Shown one piece after another: positions 7,428 through 23,553 of a DNA stretch of 64,000 nucleotides (within the stretch, counting starts at the first letter, position 1; each line of letters begins with the position of its first letter). The DNA comes from Anthoceros angustus (lineage: Eukaryota; Plantae; Anthocerotophyta): contig MU008203.1 in NCBI GenBank assembly GCA_010909165.1, forward strand, positions 186,001 through 250,000, written 5' to 3'. The translations under genes were made by a program, and so were the position numbers. Under the pieces are notes generated by a model. The model searched no databases. It had not been told where the DNA came from and was given only the letters and a program-made list of their open reading frames with translations.

Positions 7428-10400
7428 CATGAGCATGGCCTTCCTCTCCTACTCCTCTCTCTTATCCGTGCCAACCCGCGAGAGCAGTGGGAGCGACGAT
7501 TCAAGTTCCCGTCGCCCTGATTGTCGTAGCAATTCCCACGGTGATACTGCTCACCCTTCGTTCGTTTCACTTGAGAACGAGAGCAGAGAGAGCGCTCTGC
7601 TCAAAGCAGGGCACACGGTAAGAGTTGAAAGACCGAAGGCTAGGAAGGATGCAAATATACTGATCGTGCTCCAATGATGGATGAGGTTGCAGCGCATTGT
7701 CCTTTGCGATTAGGAGGAGGTGGAGGAAATTTTCTTTCAATGACTTGGAATGGCAGCAATCCTCATACAAGCATCCATCTTGTCCTGGCCAAGACAAACA
7801 ACGATAGCTAGCTTACATCCCTTGGACCAGAGTGCAGGATTTCATATAGGGCATCAACGCATTGCCACAGGCTCCTACAAATTATTACAAGGCATCTCGT
7901 AGAGGGCCAGACAGCAATACTTCAGCAATAAGTTGTCTGAAGCTAGATGCAGCCATTTTCACAACACGGTATGTATGGACCCTAAGGATTCAATGCGTTT
8001 ACTTTGTGCTTGTTGGTATAATTGAAAGATTTCATCTTCAGTGTTTTGCTTGCAGTTATTGGTGTGGATATGGGCCACAAGACTTGCGGAATGTTCCCAT
8101 GCCTCCACCACCTGTACCTATTGCTATGGAGGGTGAGAAGAAGCGTAGACGATCTCGGATTGCTAACGGTGAAAGCATCAAATACGGCTGTCAAACTTCA
8201 TTTGCCATTGCACAGTTACAAAGATGGCCAGTAATTGCATAAGCTATATGAAACTATGCACGTGGATGTTTCTGGAAGAGTGTGTCATGGCCTAGAGTAC
8301 GTAGGCATGCCAAGAGATGTCAAGGCTCCTCACTTGAGTGCTACTAACAAGAAGGCATGGGTGAAACATGGTTTACTGTGTAATGTTTCTGTGGTAGAGA
8401 TTCTTCGACAACACTAGGAGCAGGTGCGGGCGATATGTTATGGGCTTTCAACAAGCTTGGAGCATGAGTCACAGTATGTCTATGTTAGAGATGATTTCTT
8501 GACACGTGCAGACATTGACAATCTTGCCGTCAACTTGCAAGGTACAGTATGGAAACATCATCCGGATGACAATATTAGTGTGGCTATATGGATGCGGCTC
8601 AATGCTGCATTTGTGTTTCACAAGTCCACTGCTGATTAGTCGTTTTATTTGGGGATTCAGACCCCGTTCATGCTTCAGACCTGTTTGACACATGGTAAGA
8701 ATAATGTGCTCGGGATTGATTCCACGTTTGGTGTAAACCAGTACAAGTACCAGCTCTTCACAATTATGGCTTTTGACCTTCACATGAATGGTATTCCGGC
8801 AGCATGGGTTTTGGCAAAGGACAGTACAAGTGGCACCATAGCCAGGTGGCTGACATCTTTTCATGAGGTTCTGTTAAGTAAGGATGCAACTTGGTTGCCC
8901 CCCGCAATATGGGTTGATGATTGTGCAGCTGAGATTGCTGCAATTCGAAAGGTTTACAATTACAGTGTTCTTGTTCTACTTTGCCTTTGGCATGTGCGTC
9001 GTGCTTGGCTCCGTAATCTTATTAAGAAAGTCCAAAACAAGGTAGACAAGGAACTAGATGAAGCGAGGTGGGTAACGATGTACGTGAAGGGCTCCAGCAC
9101 ATCAATTCGAGATACAATTCGGGAGGGTGAGCAGTTGCTATTTTCCTTCTATGCCAAGTGGGAGAAATGGCAACCCGCGTTCGTGGGCTATTTCAAAACA
9201 ACCTGGGGTGCACAACTAGGTTAGTCCATATCTCCACCCTCGTATTCTCCCTTTTCAAGCTTGTACACATACACATCTTCACAAGGCCTGTTTTGATTGC
9301 AGGCATGTTCATTAAAAATGCCCGCATGCTTCCGCATACAGGGCAAGACTGTGCCTCTGCTATAGAGGCATGGCATCGGTTTTTTAAGCAGAAACTTAGT
9401 TTTACGAGGGCATCTCTTACTAGCAAATGAGTAGACTGGCTGTTACATCAATTGTGCTTCGTAATTGCGTCTCATTATTGGTATGTGAACCATTGCAAAG
9501 AAGGAGGGTATGTGGTTAACATAGCCGAGGAGAAACTGGTGCACATTGCAATATATGGGGTAACTCTGATTGAGGATGATAATGTTACTTTGCTTTCCCC
9601 GCCTTGTACCACAGCTTTATGGAGGAGTTCAATAGATGCCCATGTGACATATGCAATTGAGAATGCAGATTCCATGTGGGCTACATGTGAGTGTGCTCAA
9701 GGGAGGAAAGGCTTTATTTGTAAACACATCGTGAAAGTGCAGGATATGCTTGAAGTGCTCTCATACACACTCCGGATGAAACGCCGATACAAAGAACGAA
9801 TGGTCTCGTAATTCAGAGCACATGCGACTCTTGCTTTATGTGATAATAGAGAACAGGTGATGGAAAGCGTTTCGTGCAACCTGCAACCCGCTGTGGAGAG
9901 TGTTTTATGTAACGAAGGCGGAACAGAAGATCAGGTTCGCTTCCTGGAACAAGATTGCAATGCTATTGTGAATTTGATGCACAAGAATAAGGAAGTAGTG
10001 GGGGATGCAGCACTTTTGGTGAAACGTACACTCATGGATGTCCAACGTTTGATTGCATACGAGCAGGATATGCCTGCAGCACGACAAACTCTTCAAGCAT
10101 TCAACACCAACGAGGGAGACAACAACATCGTCAGGACTAAGCCATTCTTCTCAGCACCGAAGAAAAAGAAGAAGAGAGTGACTTGGAAGTTATCAGCAGA
10201 CAAAGAAAACTTGCGTAGGTGTAGGTGCGATGTAGGTGCCAGTAATGTCTCCCTTCAGATGTTTTGACCAATGCTGCAATTAATCAAAAACTCAATCTTA
10301 AGCTTGGTGATTGTCCTCTCCGCTCGTCTTGGTGATCCTCCTCTACGCTTGCCTCAGTGCGTCCCAGCTGCGCATGCCTGAACGCTGTACGTGCCGACGA

Positions 10401-14710: not shown

Positions 14711-17234
14711 CTAGATCAAAATGTTAAGGTCTTCATCTAAATCATCTGAAGAGTGCGTTTCCTGAAGCCTTGGCTGAGAGATTTTCCTAACCTCCAGAAA
14801 CATTTCATCATGATGAAGAAGTGTAAGCATAACTTCCTTGTAGCACTCCTCGGGTGTGCTGATATTAGGTAACATCCCCTGCCACAGTGTCTTCCGGGCA
14901 GCGTTCTGTTCAGCGGCTTTACCGTTCCTCTTAGCTTTCTTCTTGCTCGAGGACACGTTGAGAGGCCTTCTGTATATCATGAATGGCTTGAAGGTCATGA
15001 ACTGCTGGGATGCAGGAACAGAAGATCCAAAATCCCATAAGTAGTGGTGGGCTTTAGCACGGTGCTCTTCAGCAAACTGCTTCAGCGTAGTCTTGATGTA
15101 GGCATCGTGTGGAAGAAATAGCGCAGACATCATCTCCCTGGCCCGCTCGTTAAGAGAGGCGAGTTTGATCAGCCTGCTTGCAAACTCGTTGAATGAATTT
15201 GCCTTGAAATTTGATATGAATTTGTCGAACTGCAACCTGGCAGCCTTTATGTCGGTTTCCGAGAAATCTTTGTATCTGTCCAGCATTGTTACTGCACCCC
15301 CCTCAACTACTAGATGGTACGAGATGATGAGCATGGAGACCAACCTATCTAGGGGAGCGTAGCCAGGAATAGACCAGTTGCTGAAATCTTCCCGCGCGAT
15401 ATGAATAGACCTATGGCCGGGGCCCTCTTCCACAAAGTCCTTGCGAAGCTCCCCAGCGTTTCTGTGATCGGAGAGTTGAAAAGCTATCTTGCATTTCCTT
15501 ATCTTCACAACAGCAGATTCTATGCGGCCTCGAATGTGGAAGTACAAATTTCCGTAGAGGTCGTTGCGTGGAACATGAAACCGCTTCTCACTCGTAATCT
15601 ACAAGGTGGCAGCATTTCCATTTGTTAGGACTGCATAGCAGCAGTGGAAGATACACGTGTGCAAATGAGATGCCTCAAGACTGGACATCGAAGCATACCA
15701 TTACCTGGTGGATAGGCCAACCACCAAGAGGTTCACGCCGTGTCGACACGGCTGTCCAGCCAGCACGTGGGTTGTCAATGGCTGACACCAGAGTTGGGTT
15801 GGGGAGGCAATGGTGGTAGGAGGATTGAGCTGCAAACGGCAGGAGGAGCCCCGACTCAGCAAACTTTTCCAGGGCAGAGTAATGTGGCTCCAGCAGAAAC
15901 CCATCGATTCCTTCCGCATCCATAACCTCATATAGTCCGAGAACCGCTCCCCGACTTGCAGTCTTAGGTTCCATGGTTGAAAGTCCCATCAGAGTGAGGC
16001 ACTTATACACCTCAAGCCCATGGATTCTGACAGACAAGCTGGAACCCGAGCATGTAATCTGCTTTACAATGCCAAATAGAACGTCATCATTGTAACCGGC
16101 ACTGAGTTTCACCATGTCTTCTTGGATATCCAAGATGTGACGGTGAGGTTGGAATTGAGATGGTGGCGGTGGAACGCTGCTGCAAGGTAGGATATTAGGA
16201 GTCGTGTTTAGAAGCTGTACGATGGTGTCCATGAGCAGCAGGTATTGGCTCGGAGTCAATTCTGCAGAGTACCATATGGCAATCACTGCATCCAAGGCAC
16301 TGGAGTCAAGCTCACCAGATGCCATTCGCAGAAGAAGGGAGCACAAGATCAAGTTCCGTGCAACGGCCTGACAGTGACGCGTCTGGACATGGATTTGTAA
16401 TTCCCCTGCATATCCTTCATCAAGCTGGTGGAGAGTTTCAATCAGGTTGTTCAGATCAACCGAGTCCATCAGAAGTATCCGGAAAGGGCTTGCCATATTT
16501 CGAGCATTTCTCATCCCCCCCAGTACTCCAAAAGCAGGGACGCGATCCCAGAGTCTCACCGGACTGGGATGTGCTGCTCTCTTGTTCTCCTCAGCATGAT
16601 CAAGCAGTGCCTTCATCGTCACCCGGTCACGTTCCAACGAATCCTGCAAAGCTCTCGCGCATTCAACCTCATGCACCAATTTCCCGTGCGCTATCCGGCA
16701 CTTCCTACTGCAATACGCAACCAGCTCACAACGAGGGCACGAACTTGTGGCTGGCTTACGGCAACACTTGCCGTACCGTGGACTCAGGTTTGCACAGGGT
16801 AATCTCCTAGGCGTCTCCAGAAACACGCCCGATCCGTAACGGACGACCCTGCCCGCATCACGGAGGTGCTTGAGGAACTCCGAGAAGAAGATGGCAGGGT
16901 ATATCCCTTGCGACAAGCAAAGCTTCGCTATGGAGAGCAGGGTCCTCCCGGTGCGTTGGCACCGAGCCTGCATTGGATGAAAAGGGTGCGAGGGATCATC
17001 AGCGGAAGTGTCAGCCACATCCACAAACTCTCCGCCTAATTCCGCAACCAGCTGAGGAAAGCGCACCAGACACGCTGTCACCAGGGATTTGATCTTGTAT
17101 GATGCTGGAAGGGGCTCAATAAGATCTGACAAGGCTGTCAAGTCCATCAATGGAACTGCCGTTTCCTTGAGCAAGATCACCTTCCTGGAATATGAGTAGA
17201 GAAGCTCCCCCCACGAAGTCTCGCTGCAATCCAT
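14711..17234 (-). CDS. MYND zinc finger + DUF4470-like protein, copy 3 (exons 17234-15705, 15598-14711)
   Basis: Paralog of copy 2 with the same phase-0 intron; ITSEKRFHVPRNDLYGNLYFHIRG after splicing. Confidence 0.85.
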
Positions 17235-17756: not shown

Positions 17757-20126
17757 CTATGCAGCTTCAGGGGGAGCTGCATCTGGAGACTCATCCTTGA
17801 CAGCTGCATCTGGAGACTCATCCGTGGCAGCTGCATCTGGAGACTCATTCTTGGCAGCTGCATCTGGAGACTCATCCTTGGCAGCTGCATCTGGAGACTC
17901 ATCGTTGGCAGCTGCATCTGGAGACTCATCCTTGGCAGCTGCATCTGGAAACTCATCTTTGGCAGCTACATCTGGAGACTCATTCTTGGTGGTTTGCATG
18001 TCGCGGACAGGTACAACATGGGTATACTTAATTTGCAGCCAGTCTTCAAGATGTACTCGATAAGAATCCCTTTGATCAGGACGACAAGTATCCCCGGGAT
18101 GGGGCCTATGTAACACCATACATCTGCCAGTAAGAGGGTCCACCACCTTCTTCTTTGATCCATCCAGATTCATAATATGACACCCCAGTCGGACTAAGAA
18201 TTGCACCAACGTACTCCATTTTAAAGTGCCCTTCACTTTCCTCCATAAAATGTCTCGGGTGGATAGATCAGCCTCCTTAACCGGTCGAATGACAGGAGGC
18301 AATCCATCAACCTCTGATCCATCACCACTCGTGGAAGTAGGTGTAAAGATCTGACATGAACTTCCACCTGAAGTGGAGGAGGGGTTTGATGTTTCTGGGT
18401 GTCCTCTTGTCTTGATCTTTTCCCGGGTGGGAAGAGGCACATATTTCTCCAGGCTTCCATCCCCGACTTCCCAAAACAAATCTGAGACCGCTGGTGTCGT
18501 TTGGGGAACAGATCGATCTTCAACTATGTCAGCTCGTAGTCTGCCATTGCATCAGCAATAGTGAGTCACACTGCCCTGGCCGGGCTATAAGAAAGAGTGC
18601 TACAACAAACCAAGAAACTTTGGTGAAGTCAGGGTCAAAAGAAATGACCTGTTTTGGGCACTCAGGGTCCGCTTCTTCTTCTTGGCAACCTCCTTCCTGT
18701 GCTGGTATCGTCGAACCGCTTGCAATGGCAGGAGGGAATGTTCATACTTCTTGAACTCTGGCCGGATGGTCCCATGATACAGAGGGATATACTTGTTCTT
18801 GAAAGCCTCAAACATCTCGGCAGTCAATCCCTTGGATTCCGAAACAAGGGACGGAAGCCGTGTGAAGGAGCCAAGATTTGCCCGACGAACTTGTGCCTCT
18901 CTGACAAACAACGTCTCAAGCAAAGAGAGAGGTTTTCTGGGAACGGGAACCCGTTTCACATCCCCCATCAAGACATCATAATCATCCCCGGTGCATGTCA
19001 CCGCTGCGGAATGGTCATCGAACGTATACTTAAGAATAGCTGCCTTGATCTCCTTCTCGGTTGCCACCAAACTTGCCGCAAGCAGGAGCACCTCAATAAC
19101 CCTAAACCTGGTGCTCAGCTCGTCGATAATCGTCATAATTTGCACTGGTACATCCTGCATCTGCTCCCTGAATTCAGTGGCCCGACTGAAGGCAGAAAAC
19201 AACGATGACATCAAGGGAAAATCATGCAGGGCAGCAACACCGAGCTTCATGATGAGGAGGTGCACGTCCAAGCCGGCCTCCAATGCCTCCCACTCCCTGC
19301 CAGGGTAAAAGGGAAAGGGATTCTTGTTGATGATATCCATGTGCAGCATTCTCCGTAATTGCTCCAGCTCATCCTGAGCAGACTTCGTAGACCAGAACAA
19401 ATGAGCTATGCACTCCAACAAACAAGACTTGGCTTTCTCCTCCATCACTACAGAGCCATCAAGAGCCTTATCATATTTCTGCAAATACGTCACAAACACC
19501 TCTGCAGTGAGTTCCAATGTCCGCCAGAAAGAACGCTGGCTCTCAAGCCGCAGGAAGTAGGACAAGATCTTGGCAACGCTGGCCTTGCTCCGCGAACCCG
19601 ACACATCCACGTTATAATACCTGGACATTGCCCCTGCAAACTCTGTGAGACCCCTCTCGTATAAGACAGCAGCGTCTGCGAAACTGTCGTAGCATTCCAG
19701 CAAGATGTTGGCATGGTTGGCAAAGAAATAGCGCTGCTCCGCGGCCAGCCCCTGCAGCTGGAGAAATTGGCTCAGCAGGCACGCCTGCTGAGCGTCCGGG
19801 GACTTCCGCACTTCCTCAGGCACATACACCGCAGGCAGTTTGATGTCGCGCGCTTTGAGCGGCTTGGGGTCATCTGGGAAAAGAACCTGCTGCATCTCCA
19901 GCCACCGCTTGCCCACCAGCTCCCGCAAGTGCCCATTTCGGATTGTGGCCAGCAACGCAGGGTACTGGGGCACTCCGCTCTCCGGGAGTCTGAAGTAGTT
20001 TGAAGACGTAGCCTCCTCCCAATCCTGGGAGCATTCCAGACATATGTCCCGCTGATGCCCACAGTAGCGCACATTGTTCAGCACAGTTGTGATACCCTCT
20101 TGTGGAGGACGGTTGAACCTCGACAT
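17757..20126 (-). CDS. Uncharacterised protein: N-terminal Cys/His motif, long helical region, C-terminal HicA-like domain and acidic repeat tail (exons 20126-18649, 18540-17757)
   Basis: Phase-2 intron 18648-18541 (AAC AG|GTCA...GGCAG|A CTA) joins the 508-aa and 240-aa ORFs in frame. N-terminal CGHQRDICLEC; exon 2 GTLKWSTLVQFLVRLGC...DGS...VLHRPHP. Confidence 0.8.
17772..17987 (-). repeat. 27-bp coding tandem repeat, 8 units (KDESPDAAA-like)
   Basis: Unit ggcagctgcatctggagactcatcctt repeated with variants. Confidence 0.95.
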
Positions 20127-20554: not shown

Positions 20555-20997
20555 TAACATGTGTCTTCTTGTTTCAATCTTTTCCCGGGCTGAAGGGAAC
20601 ACAGATCCCTCCACACTTCCATCTCCCACCTTCCAGAATAAATGTGTATCTACAATGGAACACATCGGTCTTCAAGTATGTCAGCCAGAGACCTGTAATT
20701 TGCGGCAGCAAGTGAGCGACTGAGTCAAGCTGGCCTCGTGGGCTAAAACAAATGCAACACTTCGCAAGTGAAGTTCTCAAGAGAGGCTGAAAGACAACTA
20801 TCTTCAAGGCAATGCAATCCGGGACCCAAAGAAATGATCCGTCTTTGGGCAGTCGAAGATTAGCTTCTTCTTAGCAACGATCATCCTGTGCTGGTACCGT
20901 CGAACCGCTTGCAAGGGGAGAAGAGAACGTTGGTGCTTCTTGAACTACGGACGGATGCTCCCGTGGTGAAGAGTAGAATACTTGTTCTCAAAAACCT
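20555..20997 (-). pseudogene. Partial duplicate of the 17757-20126 gene (end of exon 1, intron, start of exon 2)
   Basis: FENKYSTLHHGSIRP*FKKHQRSLLPLQAVRRYQH vs FKNKYIPLYHGTIRPEFKKYEHSLLPLQAVRRYQH; ADILEDRCVP and FWKVGDGSVE..SAREKIETRRH vs ADIVEDRSVP / FWEVGDGSLE..PTREKIKTRGH; in-frame stop. Confidence 0.85.
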
Positions 20998-21360
20998 GAA
21001 TTAATTACCGACTCCGCTTGCAAGTTGCAAGTTGCAACTTGCACGCAAAAACAGTCTGCGGAACGTGGGACACGACACTGTTGGTTGGCACGGTTTCCAC
21101 GCTCCACACTCCGTCTTTTTTGATCCCGCTGCCCATTCAAGTTCAAGCTGAATGATTCAGCTGGCATATGAATCGGGCTCGCCCGATGGGACGCACGTGA
21201 GGATCCGGCAGAAAGCGAGAGGCCCGGCGGTGGGTCGGTTGCAGATGCGGCCCGCAGATGCTGCACTAGCACAGGCAGATCGGGATCGGGATCGGGATCG
21301 AAGACCGAGTCAGGGCAGTTGCCGTTGATTTGAGCCGAAACCCGGCCCGTGCTGCGAGCA

Positions 21361-23553
21361 ATGCTCGCAACGATGGCGCTGGGCTTGATTCTGCGGCTGG
21401 CATTCTGCACCGTCCTCTTCCCGCTTCTGCACGGGGCCATTCCCTTACGAAGCTTCCAGGCAGATCCGAGGAACACCGCCGGGGTGGATCTGCTCCAGCT
21501 GCCTGCGGGGCAGACATACCTCGCCTTCCCCGCAGCCCAAGATCGGCATCCGACATCGGCCGCGGTGGCAACCAGGTTGCTGCACGGAAGCCCGGTCCAA
21601 TTCAAGGATGCGCAGAGCCGGGCGCTCTCCTTCAGCACGGCCTTCCAGGTGTGGGCGGCGGGGGCGACCTTGGCGGGCTACCGCGATGGCAGCAACGTGC
21701 TGGAAGGCCTGGCCTTCGTCCTGGTCCCGGACACCGCCACCCAAGGCGCTGCCGGGGGCTACATGGGCGTGCTGGACTCGGATTCCCCATCCTCGTCCAA
21801 TTCCAGCCAGACCTTCGCAGTGGAGATCGACACGTCCTTCACCTCCGAGTTCTCAGATCCGAGCTCCCTGCACATCGGCATCGACCTCAACACCATGACA
21901 TCCTCCTCGTCCGCCCCGATCCCATACGACTTCCCCGACTACGGCGCCTCGCTCTACGTCTGGATCGAGTACCACAGCCCGACGCAGATCCTGGAAACCA
22001 GAGTCTCCAACAATCCAAACCGGCCGGGCCTGCCCACGCTGGTGCAAACAATCGGGCTCGGGAGCTTGCTGGAGGATTCCATGTTTGTGGGTTTCTCAGC
22101 GTCCTTCAATCCGTGCTCCGGGCGGGACGATCAGGGGCAAGGCTGTGTTGGGTTTGTGGCGATCGAGAGATGGAGCTTCGAGACGTTCGAGGCCGAGTCA
22201 CCGGCTGTGCCGGCATCGCTGCCGATGAGGGAGTCGGCTTCCCAGAGGAACACCCGGACGCTCAAGGCGATTGTGCTCGTGTTGGGGCTGGCTGCTGTCG
22301 TGGGGATCGGGCTGTGGGCCTACTTCCGGTGGGAGGACGAGCAGCTCGCGCGCAATGTCGGGTATGTCGGCAGGCATGGGGCGCGGGAGTTCGGGTACAA
22401 GGAGCTGAGCGTGGCTACCGAGGGGTTCGCCGGGAAGCAGGCCATCGGGGGCGGGAGTGTGTTCCGGGGCTCGCTGCCCGGGGGGAAGGGGGACGCGGCT
22501 GTGAAAAAGGTGGCGGTGGAGTCCAAGGAGGAGGAGAGCCGGTTTGTGGCGAGGGCGCAGGCTCTGGCGCGGGCCCGGCTCCGGCATGACAGCCTGGTTC
22601 CGTTGTTGGGTTGGTGTTATGAGAAGGGCGAGCTTCTGGTGGTGTACGATTACATGCCCGGGGGTAGCCTGGATCGGCTTCTCTTCCAGGAGCACGGCTC
22701 TGCCTTGTCGTGGAAGAACAGGTATGTTTCCATGATGTGTGTTGTTGGGCTGGTATGAAAGGTGGGAGAAGGAGAAGAGAAGGTTTCATGTGACTGAATC
22801 ATGGTGGGTGGTTTGCAGGCTGAGGGCTGCGCGCGGGGTGGCCATGGCGGTGGTGTACTTGCATGAAGGAGCCCAGCAGCCCTTTCTGCACTGCAACATC
22901 AAGGCCAGCAATGTGATGCTGGACGCCAAGTTCAATGCCAGGCTTGGTGATTTCGGGTTTTTGTGCTCTGTGCAGCGTAACCGAGCAGCCAGTTTCGGCT
23001 ACCGGGCTCCTGAACTTCACCGCTCGTCAGCAGGTGGGGTTGCTGAGTGTGGATGGCATGATAGGAGTAGACACGCCTGTCTTCTCCCATGAGTTTTGCA
23101 GGTTTCAAGCATTGAAATGTGATCTGTGTCCTGATAGATCAAGCAACGGCGGCAACAGACGTTTACAGCTATGGAGTCTTCCTTCTCGAGGTTGCGTGTG
23201 GGAGGGTGCCTGTGGACGCGAAAGCACCGGAAGAGAGGGTGTTCTTAGTCGACTGGGTGTGGGAGCTCCATGCGCGGGGAAGGCTGATGGACGCGGCAGA
23301 TGCCACACTGCATGGACAGTACGATGCGCAGGAGATGGCGATGTTGATGCGTCTAGGGCTGGTGTGCTGCCACCCCGATCCTAGTGCGAGGCCGTCCATG
23401 CGACAGGTGTTGATGATGTTTGATGGAGCGCTGCCTCCTCCTGATCTACCCAAGTCCAGGCCAGTGACCGCCTTCGGTGACCGAGGGAAGGCTGAAATTG
23501 TGCAAGAGCTTAGAATGGAAGCTTGCCTGCAGGTGAGCGAGCGGCAACTGTGA
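21361..23553 (+). CDS. L-type lectin receptor-like kinase (probable pseudokinase); exons 21361-22721, 22819-23033, 23138-23553
   Basis: Signal peptide; legume-lectin motifs (FSTAF, EGLAFVL, FAVEIDT, HIGIDLN, MFVGFSAS); TM AIVLVLGLAAVVGIGLWAYF; kinase FGYKELSVAT, AVKK, LLGWC, DFG, GYRAPE, TDVYSYG, CCHPDPSARPSMRQV; all splice phases consistent. Confidence 0.92.

Follow-up and report, generated by a model that had tools for sequence, protein, structure and literature searches.

How does a domain of the HicA family, an RNA-cutting bacterial toxin module of the type II hicAB toxin-antitoxin systems, come to stand at the end of a plant protein, and what might it do there? The question is raised by a stretch of 64,000 nucleotides from Anthoceros angustus (GCA_010909165.1, contig MU008203.1, positions 186,001 to 250,000 of the forward strand), referred to here as the window. 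Its minus strand carries a plant gene of two exons and 753 codons in total, and the C-terminus of the encoded protein is HicA-like. The original prediction, made from the letters of the window, had noted this domain at 18024-18260 behind a Cys/His motif and a long helical sequence, and had proposed a sensor-effector protein of immunity or programmed cell death. Sequence profiles and a predicted fold indicate that the domain is almost certainly homologous to HicA, as a divergent copy. The gene shows a HicA domain domesticated in eukaryotes: it is expressed, spliced, conserved and held in a fixed architecture in bryophytes, ferns and chytrids.

The homology with HicA is established by the agreement of a Pfam scan, an exhaustive sequence search, a profile-profile comparison and the predicted fold. 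In the Pfam scan of exon 2, HicA_toxin (PF07927) is the sole match (E 0.0021, 18.5 bits, profile positions 1-46 of 58). The homologues P0001, P0002, P0003 and P0021 each match the same profile independently (17.1-23.4 bits, E 6.5e-5 to 5.8e-3), and P0005, P0007 and P0009 have no PF07927 match in the Pfam scan. When 1.84 billion representative proteins are searched by HMMER with a three-sequence profile of the domain, 20 of them match: the eukaryotic family, one false positive and eight bacterial proteins (P0013-P0020). The bacterial proteins are 75-92 aa long, with HMMER E-values of 5e-7 to 9e-4, and score 34.7-48.1 bits against PF07927, above its gathering cut-off. The false positive, P0010 (1227 aa, 13 matched stretches), is an ankyrin-repeat protein whose match is driven by its repeats, and it was rejected. 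Aligned by hhalign with the eight bacterial proteins, the nine-sequence alignment of the eukaryotic domain gives 99.4% (E 1.9e-21, 75 columns). The bacterial subfamily profile matches the solved HicA of B. pseudomallei. Searches of PDB sequences with profiles of the eukaryotic domain alone return nothing, even at E 10; the link to solved HicA runs only through the bacterial subfamily profile and the fold search.

The AlphaFold2 (AF2) model of the domain consists of a helix at residues 3-16, a second helix at 22-31, strands at 35-40, 43-47 and 54-58, and a final helix at 68-82, giving the order H-H-E-E-E-H. Its best Foldseek match in the PDB is E. coli HicA (probability 0.89), and B. pseudomallei HicA ranks fifth and ninth. 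VIA, which is independent of Foldseek, was run over 48,161 chains, and its top four are all HicA (1whz, 6g26_E, 4p78_D and 5yrz_D), with Z of 4.1-4.6 and a root-mean-square deviation of 2.6-3.1 over 55-64 residues. The subfamily pattern of the original prediction (W...LG...GS[R/K]...HxPHP) is borne out by HMMER, hhalign and fold, and the anticipated alpha-beta-beta-beta-alpha arrangement, preceded by an extra helix, has HicA as its nearest structural neighbour. The expected HicA profile match holds in part: PF07927 is found with no competitor and the bacterial relatives pass its cut-off, and the domain's own score stays below it.

The open reading frames (ORFs) of the minus strand include one of 508 codons (20126-18600) and one of 240 codons (18479-17757), and the second contains the peptide TRDILWRKVKGTLKWSTLVQFLVRLGCHIMNLDGSKKKVVDPLTGRCMVLHRPHPGDTCRPDQRDSYRVHLEDWLQIKY, which the span 18024-18260 of the original prediction covers. 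The segment 17757-18539 is free of stops on this strand and its translation contains the same peptide. A search with exon 1 finds at least two full-length homologues, P0001 (688 aa) and P0002 (779 aa), and because both are continuous from the first ORF into the second, a GT..AG intron was predicted at 18648-18541. A contig of 2370 nt from the public reads of run X1 has 0 mismatches to the window, spans 20300-18649 and 18540-17920, and omits precisely 108 nt, which read CT..AC on the plus strand. This establishes transcription and splicing of the gene, with exon 2 joined exactly to exon 1 as assumed. Exon 1 and the N-terminal part of P0001, a Pteridium transcript protein, are 53% identical by alignment and 52% by the search. 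The two exons were analysed separately, each by its coordinates. A related species with about 90% identity (runs X2 and X3) has an orthologue of the gene. In its HicA-like domain, three changes are synonymous, one is non-synonymous and affects a variable position, and a 3-nt deletion shortens a lysine run in frame. These differences comprise the best-supported ones and are not a dN/dS estimate (ratio of non-synonymous to synonymous rates); at the level of sequence they are indicative of purifying selection. In the plant homologue P0021 (820 aa), the gene is a single uninterrupted ORF (L036:4939-7401, on a 9.2-kb contig) and adjoins a pentatricopeptide-repeat (PPR) gene; either the intron is absent in that species or the contig is derived from a transcript.

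The same architecture, an orphan helical region of about 400 aa followed by a C-terminal HicA-like domain, occurs in mosses, liverworts, a fern and a chytrid fungus. Its named members are a transcript of the fern Pteridium aquilinum (EP00250_P006603), two paralogues of the moss Ceratodon purpureus (M758_1G017900 and M758_10G019400), one protein of the liverwort Marchantia paleacea (Mapa_010793), two of the liverwort Riccia sorocarpa (R1sor_014864 and R1sor_001336), and one of the chytrid Nowakowskiella sp. JEL0407 (HK098_003040). All are deposited as hypothetical proteins with neither a functional annotation nor an assigned Pfam domain, and they are unannotated in public databases because the Pfam score is below threshold. 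The chytrid member agrees with the earlier expectation of HicA-like C-termini in fungal helical proteins. Each genome has one or two copies. Across the fern, the moss and A. angustus the domain has 66-77% identity, against 31-53% for the N-terminal region among plant homologues.

In a tree with 33 bacterial sequences, ten eukaryotic HicA domains form one clade (support 100/99). Since the helical region is common to plants and chytrids and the eukaryotic HicA domains form a single clade, the fusion arose once. The homologue survey and phylogeny envisaged at the outset thus yield members in five named eukaryotes and one eukaryotic lineage of the domain. Within this clade the fern is the partner of the window's copy, and a chytrid pair falls among the plants on a long branch with weak support, a placement compatible with either direction of any plant-fungus transfer. 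Members from metagenomic and Logan contigs are flanked by eukaryotic genes, namely PPR in one case, ERGIC, aquaporin (MIP) and Mito_carr in another, and FAN1 with NuA4 in a third. A 202-aa ORF precedes the metagenomic protein P0012 (200 aa) on the same strand (L038:1623-2939), in a contig where FAN1, NuA4 and a proteasome ATPase are neighbours; P0012 probably represents an incorrectly called gene with several exons that belongs to the HicA-fusion family and comes from a microbial eukaryote. No seed-plant member is present among the 20 matches of the exhaustive search, and as each 50% cluster enters that library through a single representative, the absence of the family from seed plants is suggested at most. 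Searches with exon 1 and with the full-length alignment, each saturated at 8000 candidates, list two proteins apiece, so that members in further plants may well exist.

The active site of the domain differs from that of canonical HicA. Through the bacterial profile alignment, G41 of the domain equals Gly22 of B. pseudomallei HicA, and K43 occupies the position of its His24. The residue after Gly-Ser is Lys in eight and Arg in three of the 11 eukaryotic sequences, none of which has the canonical His; among the 33 bacterial relatives it is Arg in 27, His in three, and Ser, Val and Ala in one each. G41 is invariant (11/11 eukaryotic, 33/33 bacterial). Among the eukaryotic sequences that reach the column, H58 is kept in 9/10, P60 in 10/10 and H61 in 10/10, and HxPHP is present in 30/30 bacterial relatives of the GS[R/S/V/A] type. 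The three bacterial relatives with GSH, all from Verrucomicrobiota, have Gln in place of the first His and lack the PHP arrangement. The reported absence of the GSH histidine and presence of HxPH are therefore correct for the window's domain. A zinc site composed of the plant-conserved cysteines and HxPH was rejected as a possibility, as those cysteines are missing from the chytrid-type members.

The prokaryotic counterparts of the domain are paired toxins. A scan of prokaryotes, with one genome per species and a four-sequence bacterial alignment as query, finds 28 loci (L008-L035) of this N-terminally extended HicA type in Comamonadaceae, Nitrosomonas, Holophagaceae, Gastranaerophilales, Pseudomonas, Photorhabdus and Verrucomicrobiota. 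In 24/24 untruncated GS[R/A] loci, hicA is followed at a distance of up to about 35 nt by the start of a PF05534-like hicB, and the genes of P0013-P0020 have a PF05534 HicB directly downstream where their contigs reach. The position of hicB directly 3' of hicA marks these loci as genuine toxin-antitoxin pairs. By alignment, the Lys/Arg-for-His substitution of the eukaryotic domain is inherited from the bacterial GS[R] subfamily. An antitoxin kept by a subfamily without the GSH histidine is most simply read as toxicity that has survived with its catalytic residues in a shifted arrangement. The active site thus seems to have moved in this large and so far uncharacterised group of bacterial HicA proteins, which have GSR, always HxPHP, and a retained hicB.

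The plant gene has no such partner. Three HicB proteins of PF05534, compared by tblastn with the 64-kb window, give a best E of 0.16, and the Pfam scans made for both exons and for the homologues contain no HicB family; HicB families other than PF05534 are covered through the Pfam scan of the gene's own ORFs. The statement that no HicB lies nearby stands on this comparison.

The features of the gene and of its surroundings are collected in the following table. The zinc-knuckle-like motif of exon 1 has four ligands in the context LNNVRYC-G-H-QRDI-C-LE-C, and together with the helical region it is situated before the HicA-like domain as the original prediction described. It is kept in the fern, moss and liverwort homologues and is absent from the aligned P0002, P0021 and chytrid-type proteins; its AF2 confidence is low (predicted local distance difference test, pLDDT, <50). 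The helical region has no relative in Pfam (including SMC), NCBIfam, PADLOC, PDB or ESM-Atlas, whether searched by structure or by feature. A fold search with the 492-residue exon-1 model finds no credible relative, with TM <=0.2 in PDB and <=0.27 by query in the ESM Atlas. The helical regions of plant and chytrid-type proteins are homologous to each other (hhalign 97.4%, E 1.5e-11, 312 columns). The Lys-rich patch KEVAKKKKR is, from its composition, a possible nuclear localisation signal and the sole hint of a nuclear protein. A variable linker rich in Ser and Pro lies between the LFWEVGDGSLEKYVPLPTREKIKTR motif and the HicA-like domain. After this domain, eight 27-nt units encode acidic nine-residue units of the DESPDAAAK type, a tail present only in the window's copy and absent from its homologues, including P0001 and P0002. 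The repeat region disrupts transcript assembly and has a 9-nt insertion in the related species, so its copy number is probably variable.

Features of the HicA-fusion gene and its neighbours (window coordinates; tblastn and Pfam values where available)
Feature	Coordinates	Strand	Details
Exon 1	18649..20126	-	ATG at 20126; 492 codons plus 2 nt; covered by the spliced contig of run X1
Intron	18541..18648	-	108 nt, GT..AG, phase 2; exact joint 18540->18649 in the run X1 contig
Exon 2	17757..18540	-	260 codons plus stop 17757-17759; open frame, aligned to P0001 and P0002
Zinc-knuckle-like motif C22-x-H24-x4-C29-x2-C32 (LNNVRYCGHQRDICLEC)	20031..20063	-	from sequence
Orphan all-helical region	18654..19817	-	residues ~104-491 (about 390 aa); AF2 pLDDT 71, predicted template modelling score (pTM) 0.74, long helices
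K-rich patch KEVAKKKKR	18669..18695	-	end of helical region; K483/K484 invariant in 10/10 aligned homologues
Conserved linear motif LFWEVGDGSLEKYVPLPTREKIKTR	18405..18479	-	start of exon 2; near-invariant in plants, recognisable in chytrid-type proteins
HicA-like domain with extra N-terminal helix	18000..18281	-	94 residues; Pfam-aligned core 18078-18218
G-S-K	18153..18161	-	Lys in place of the catalytic His24, Gly22 retained (positions by alignment to B. pseudomallei HicA)
H-R-P-H-P after strand beta-3	18096..18110	-	H58 and H61 in domain numbering
C-terminal repeat tail	17775..17989	-	Tandem Repeats Finder (TRF): period 27, 8.0 copies, 93% matches
Decayed partial copy of the same gene	20561..21004	-	directly upstream; tblastn 68% over 47 aa, E 1.5e-14
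L-type (legume-lectin) receptor kinase gene	21349-23553	+	at least 3 ORFs; Lectin_legB E 5.6e-32, kinase fragments
zf-MYND and DUF4470 ORF	15675-17234	-	519 codons; Pfam E 1.8e-4 and 2.3e-14
278-codon ORF	14711-15547	-	no Pfam match

In the decayed copy, the final part of exon 1 is interrupted in frame by a stop (HHGSIRP*FKKH, the asterisk marking the stop) and the start of exon 2 (FWKVGDGSVEGSVFPSAREKIETRRH) is preserved; the translations of the copy contain no HicA domain downstream of that start. The lectin receptor kinase gene confirms that the window is plant nuclear DNA. On the other side of the HicA-fusion gene, the combination of zf-MYND and DUF4470 is an architecture commoner in fungi than in plants.

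The reading preferred here, held with about even confidence, is that the protein contains a HicA-derived RNA-targeting module, probably still RNA-cutting through the HxPHP histidines, and restrained in cis or by localisation without HicB. The module very likely binds RNA; that it also retains RNA cleavage is about as probable as its loss. The protein would consist of four parts, namely the Cys/His knuckle, the helical region with its Lys-rich patch, the linear motif with a disordered linker, and the C-terminal HicA-family domain. The origin of this domain would lie among bacterial hicAB toxins, in the subfamily with an N-terminal extension and GS[R/K]...HxPHP, and its single fusion to the helical region would have taken place in an ancestor common, vertically or by transfer, to bryophytes, ferns and chytrids. 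The HxPHP histidines would replace the GSH histidine, as in the antitoxin-paired bacterial relatives, and as there is no HicB, control may be exerted in cis by the helical region or the linker, or through localisation.

Several observations weigh against the RNA-cutting module. The canonical histidine (His23/24/28/36) is essential by mutagenesis in all HicA studied (PMC11594946), and this essential residue (PMC11594946, PMC12297915) is Lys in the window's domain. Gonococcal HicA requires His24, and toxicity is not reduced when its His40, located after beta-3 and spatially near His24, is changed to Ala (PMC12297915); by position, not by alignment, His40 would be the counterpart of H61. The mutual exclusion of GSH and HxPHP rests on one GSH clade, which makes it a single evolutionary contrast. 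To our knowledge there is no assayed case of a HicA of the GS[R/K] type. Docking of the predicted HicA domain on the helical region, which bears on inhibition in cis, scores 0.16 against a mark of 0.34 and yields no verdict. On the side of the homology, no plant member reaches the 27-bit gathering cut-off of PF07927, the AF2 model of the domain is of moderate confidence (pLDDT 65), and the VIA Z-scores are low in absolute terms, which is outweighed by HicA taking all top ranks for a domain of ~75 residues.

The replacement of the catalytic His by Lys or Arg throughout the eukaryotic sequences (11/11) is also what would be expected of a catalytically dead, domesticated RNA-binding adaptor, resembling a dsRBD (domain that binds double-stranded RNA), that tethers the helical scaffold to RNA or ribonucleoprotein in a conserved housekeeping or regulatory process. 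Such an adaptor is a possibility of some weight, short of being probable. It agrees with the many conserved basic residues of the domain (RKVKG, GSKKK, R53, R67 and R75), with a domain identity far above that of the N-terminal region, with one or two copies per genome, and with the lack of an antitoxin, as an uninhibited RNase would be hard to tolerate. However, an antitoxin is kept at every complete locus of the bacterial relatives that have these substitutions, which argues that toxicity survives the loss of GSH, and the conservation of HxPHP and of the Gly22 equivalent is tighter than the upkeep of the fold seems to require. Chance resemblance, bacterial contamination or a dead relic would fit the sub-threshold Pfam score and the empty PDB sequence searches with the eukaryotic domain profiles, but is effectively excluded by the hhalign value and significant library-wide E-values, the concordant structural neighbours, the spliced transcript between plant genes on either side, and the conserved orthologues in five named eukaryotes.

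The sensor-effector role of the original prediction, in which the helical region would sense a pathogen or stress and free the HicA RNase for translation shutdown in immunity or cell death, is compatible with an RNA-targeting module and unlikely as the actual function. By analogy it resembles bacterial helical and SMC-HicA fusions (Classes 13 and 14) and other hicA contexts proposed to be anti-phage (PMC10865869), and the patchy taxonomic spread and the decayed partial duplicate adjoining the gene, which hints at local turnover, would suit it. In contrast, neither exon nor any homologue matches a PADLOC defence model, and the Pfam scans reveal no NB-ARC, TIR, LRR or other known sensor domain. 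The strong conservation of the domain and its low copy number differ from an expanded, fast-evolving family, and the docking result gives the role no verdict. Its support is indirect and consists of analogy, distribution and signs of turnover.

HicA has so far been treated as a toxin of prokaryotes and phages. Full-text literature searches and HicA reviews contain no description of a eukaryotic HicA, in keeping with the first impression that the arrangement had not been described in plants, and the 14 classes of the most recent survey of HicA genetic contexts are all prokaryotic (PMC10865869). The kind of domain is known, and the eukaryotic, antitoxin-free, fixed multi-domain setting is new. 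The family is not unique to A. angustus, as mosses, liverworts, a fern and a chytrid have unannotated members in the databases, and standard annotation has missed it because it lies below the Pfam threshold. It is a candidate for gene transfer between plants and fungi, or from bacteria to eukaryotes, around the colonisation of land. In the most far-reaching version, which is improbable, an early land plant or chytrid lineage would have captured a bacterial toxin-antitoxin RNase, welded it to a new helical sensor or regulator, and kept it for >400 million years as a cis-regulated effector, free of an antitoxin, that cleaves RNA by means of a relocated active site (HxPHP for GSH). If so, it would be the first eukaryotic mRNA interferase of the HicA type, possibly for antiviral or stress-induced translational shutdown, and the plant-chytrid distribution would be a record of gene transfer between kingdoms. 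The genetics of Marchantia and mosses offer a tractable route to the taming of a toxin module without its antitoxin. If the domain only binds RNA, it would still be a clean exaptation of a toxin domain, of narrower interest.

Compared with known systems, the plant domain is closest to the bacterial GS[R]...HxPHP HicA proteins of 75-92 aa. Both have an extra N-terminal helix, a Trp that starts alpha-1, the LG motif, a basic residue after Gly-Ser, HxPHP after beta-3, and an acidic alpha-2 (LED/LEE), with 30-34% identity by tblastn in addition to the hhalign agreement. The bacterial proteins are free-standing and followed by hicB, whereas the plant domain forms the C-terminal end of a protein of 753 residues without HicB; it also differs in the Lys after Gly-Ser, the conserved C34, C54 and C66, and a DQ motif. 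The canonical solved HicA (E. coli 6hpb, B. pseudomallei 4c26/6g26, Y. pestis HicA3 4p78, S. pneumoniae 5yrz and T. thermophilus 1whz) has the same alpha-beta-beta-beta-alpha, dsRBD-like fold that is predicted for the plant domain, and shares the Gly22 equivalent and a PHP-type His after beta-3. In contrast, the plant domain has Lys for the G-S-H histidine, sub-threshold sequence similarity and no antitoxin.

Fused HicA is known from prokaryotes as Class 13, an alpha-helical N-terminus with HicA in 340-440 aa, and Class 14, SMC with HicA, and these fusions are discussed as cis-regulated toxins (PMC10865869). They resemble the plant protein in having one polypeptide with a large helical N-terminal part, a C-terminal HicA and no separate antitoxin gene. 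They differ in being prokaryotic, and the comparison is made here by description, without implying homology of the helical parts; among the matches of the exhaustive search, those closest to the plant HicA domain are monodomain proteins and not Class 13/14 fusions. The deposited eukaryotic hypothetical proteins have the same architecture and HicA-like C-terminus, and are orthologues or paralogues of the window's gene. Among them, the chytrid-type proteins differ by the absence of the Cys/His knuckle, and the window's copy alone has the acidic tail of eight nine-residue units.

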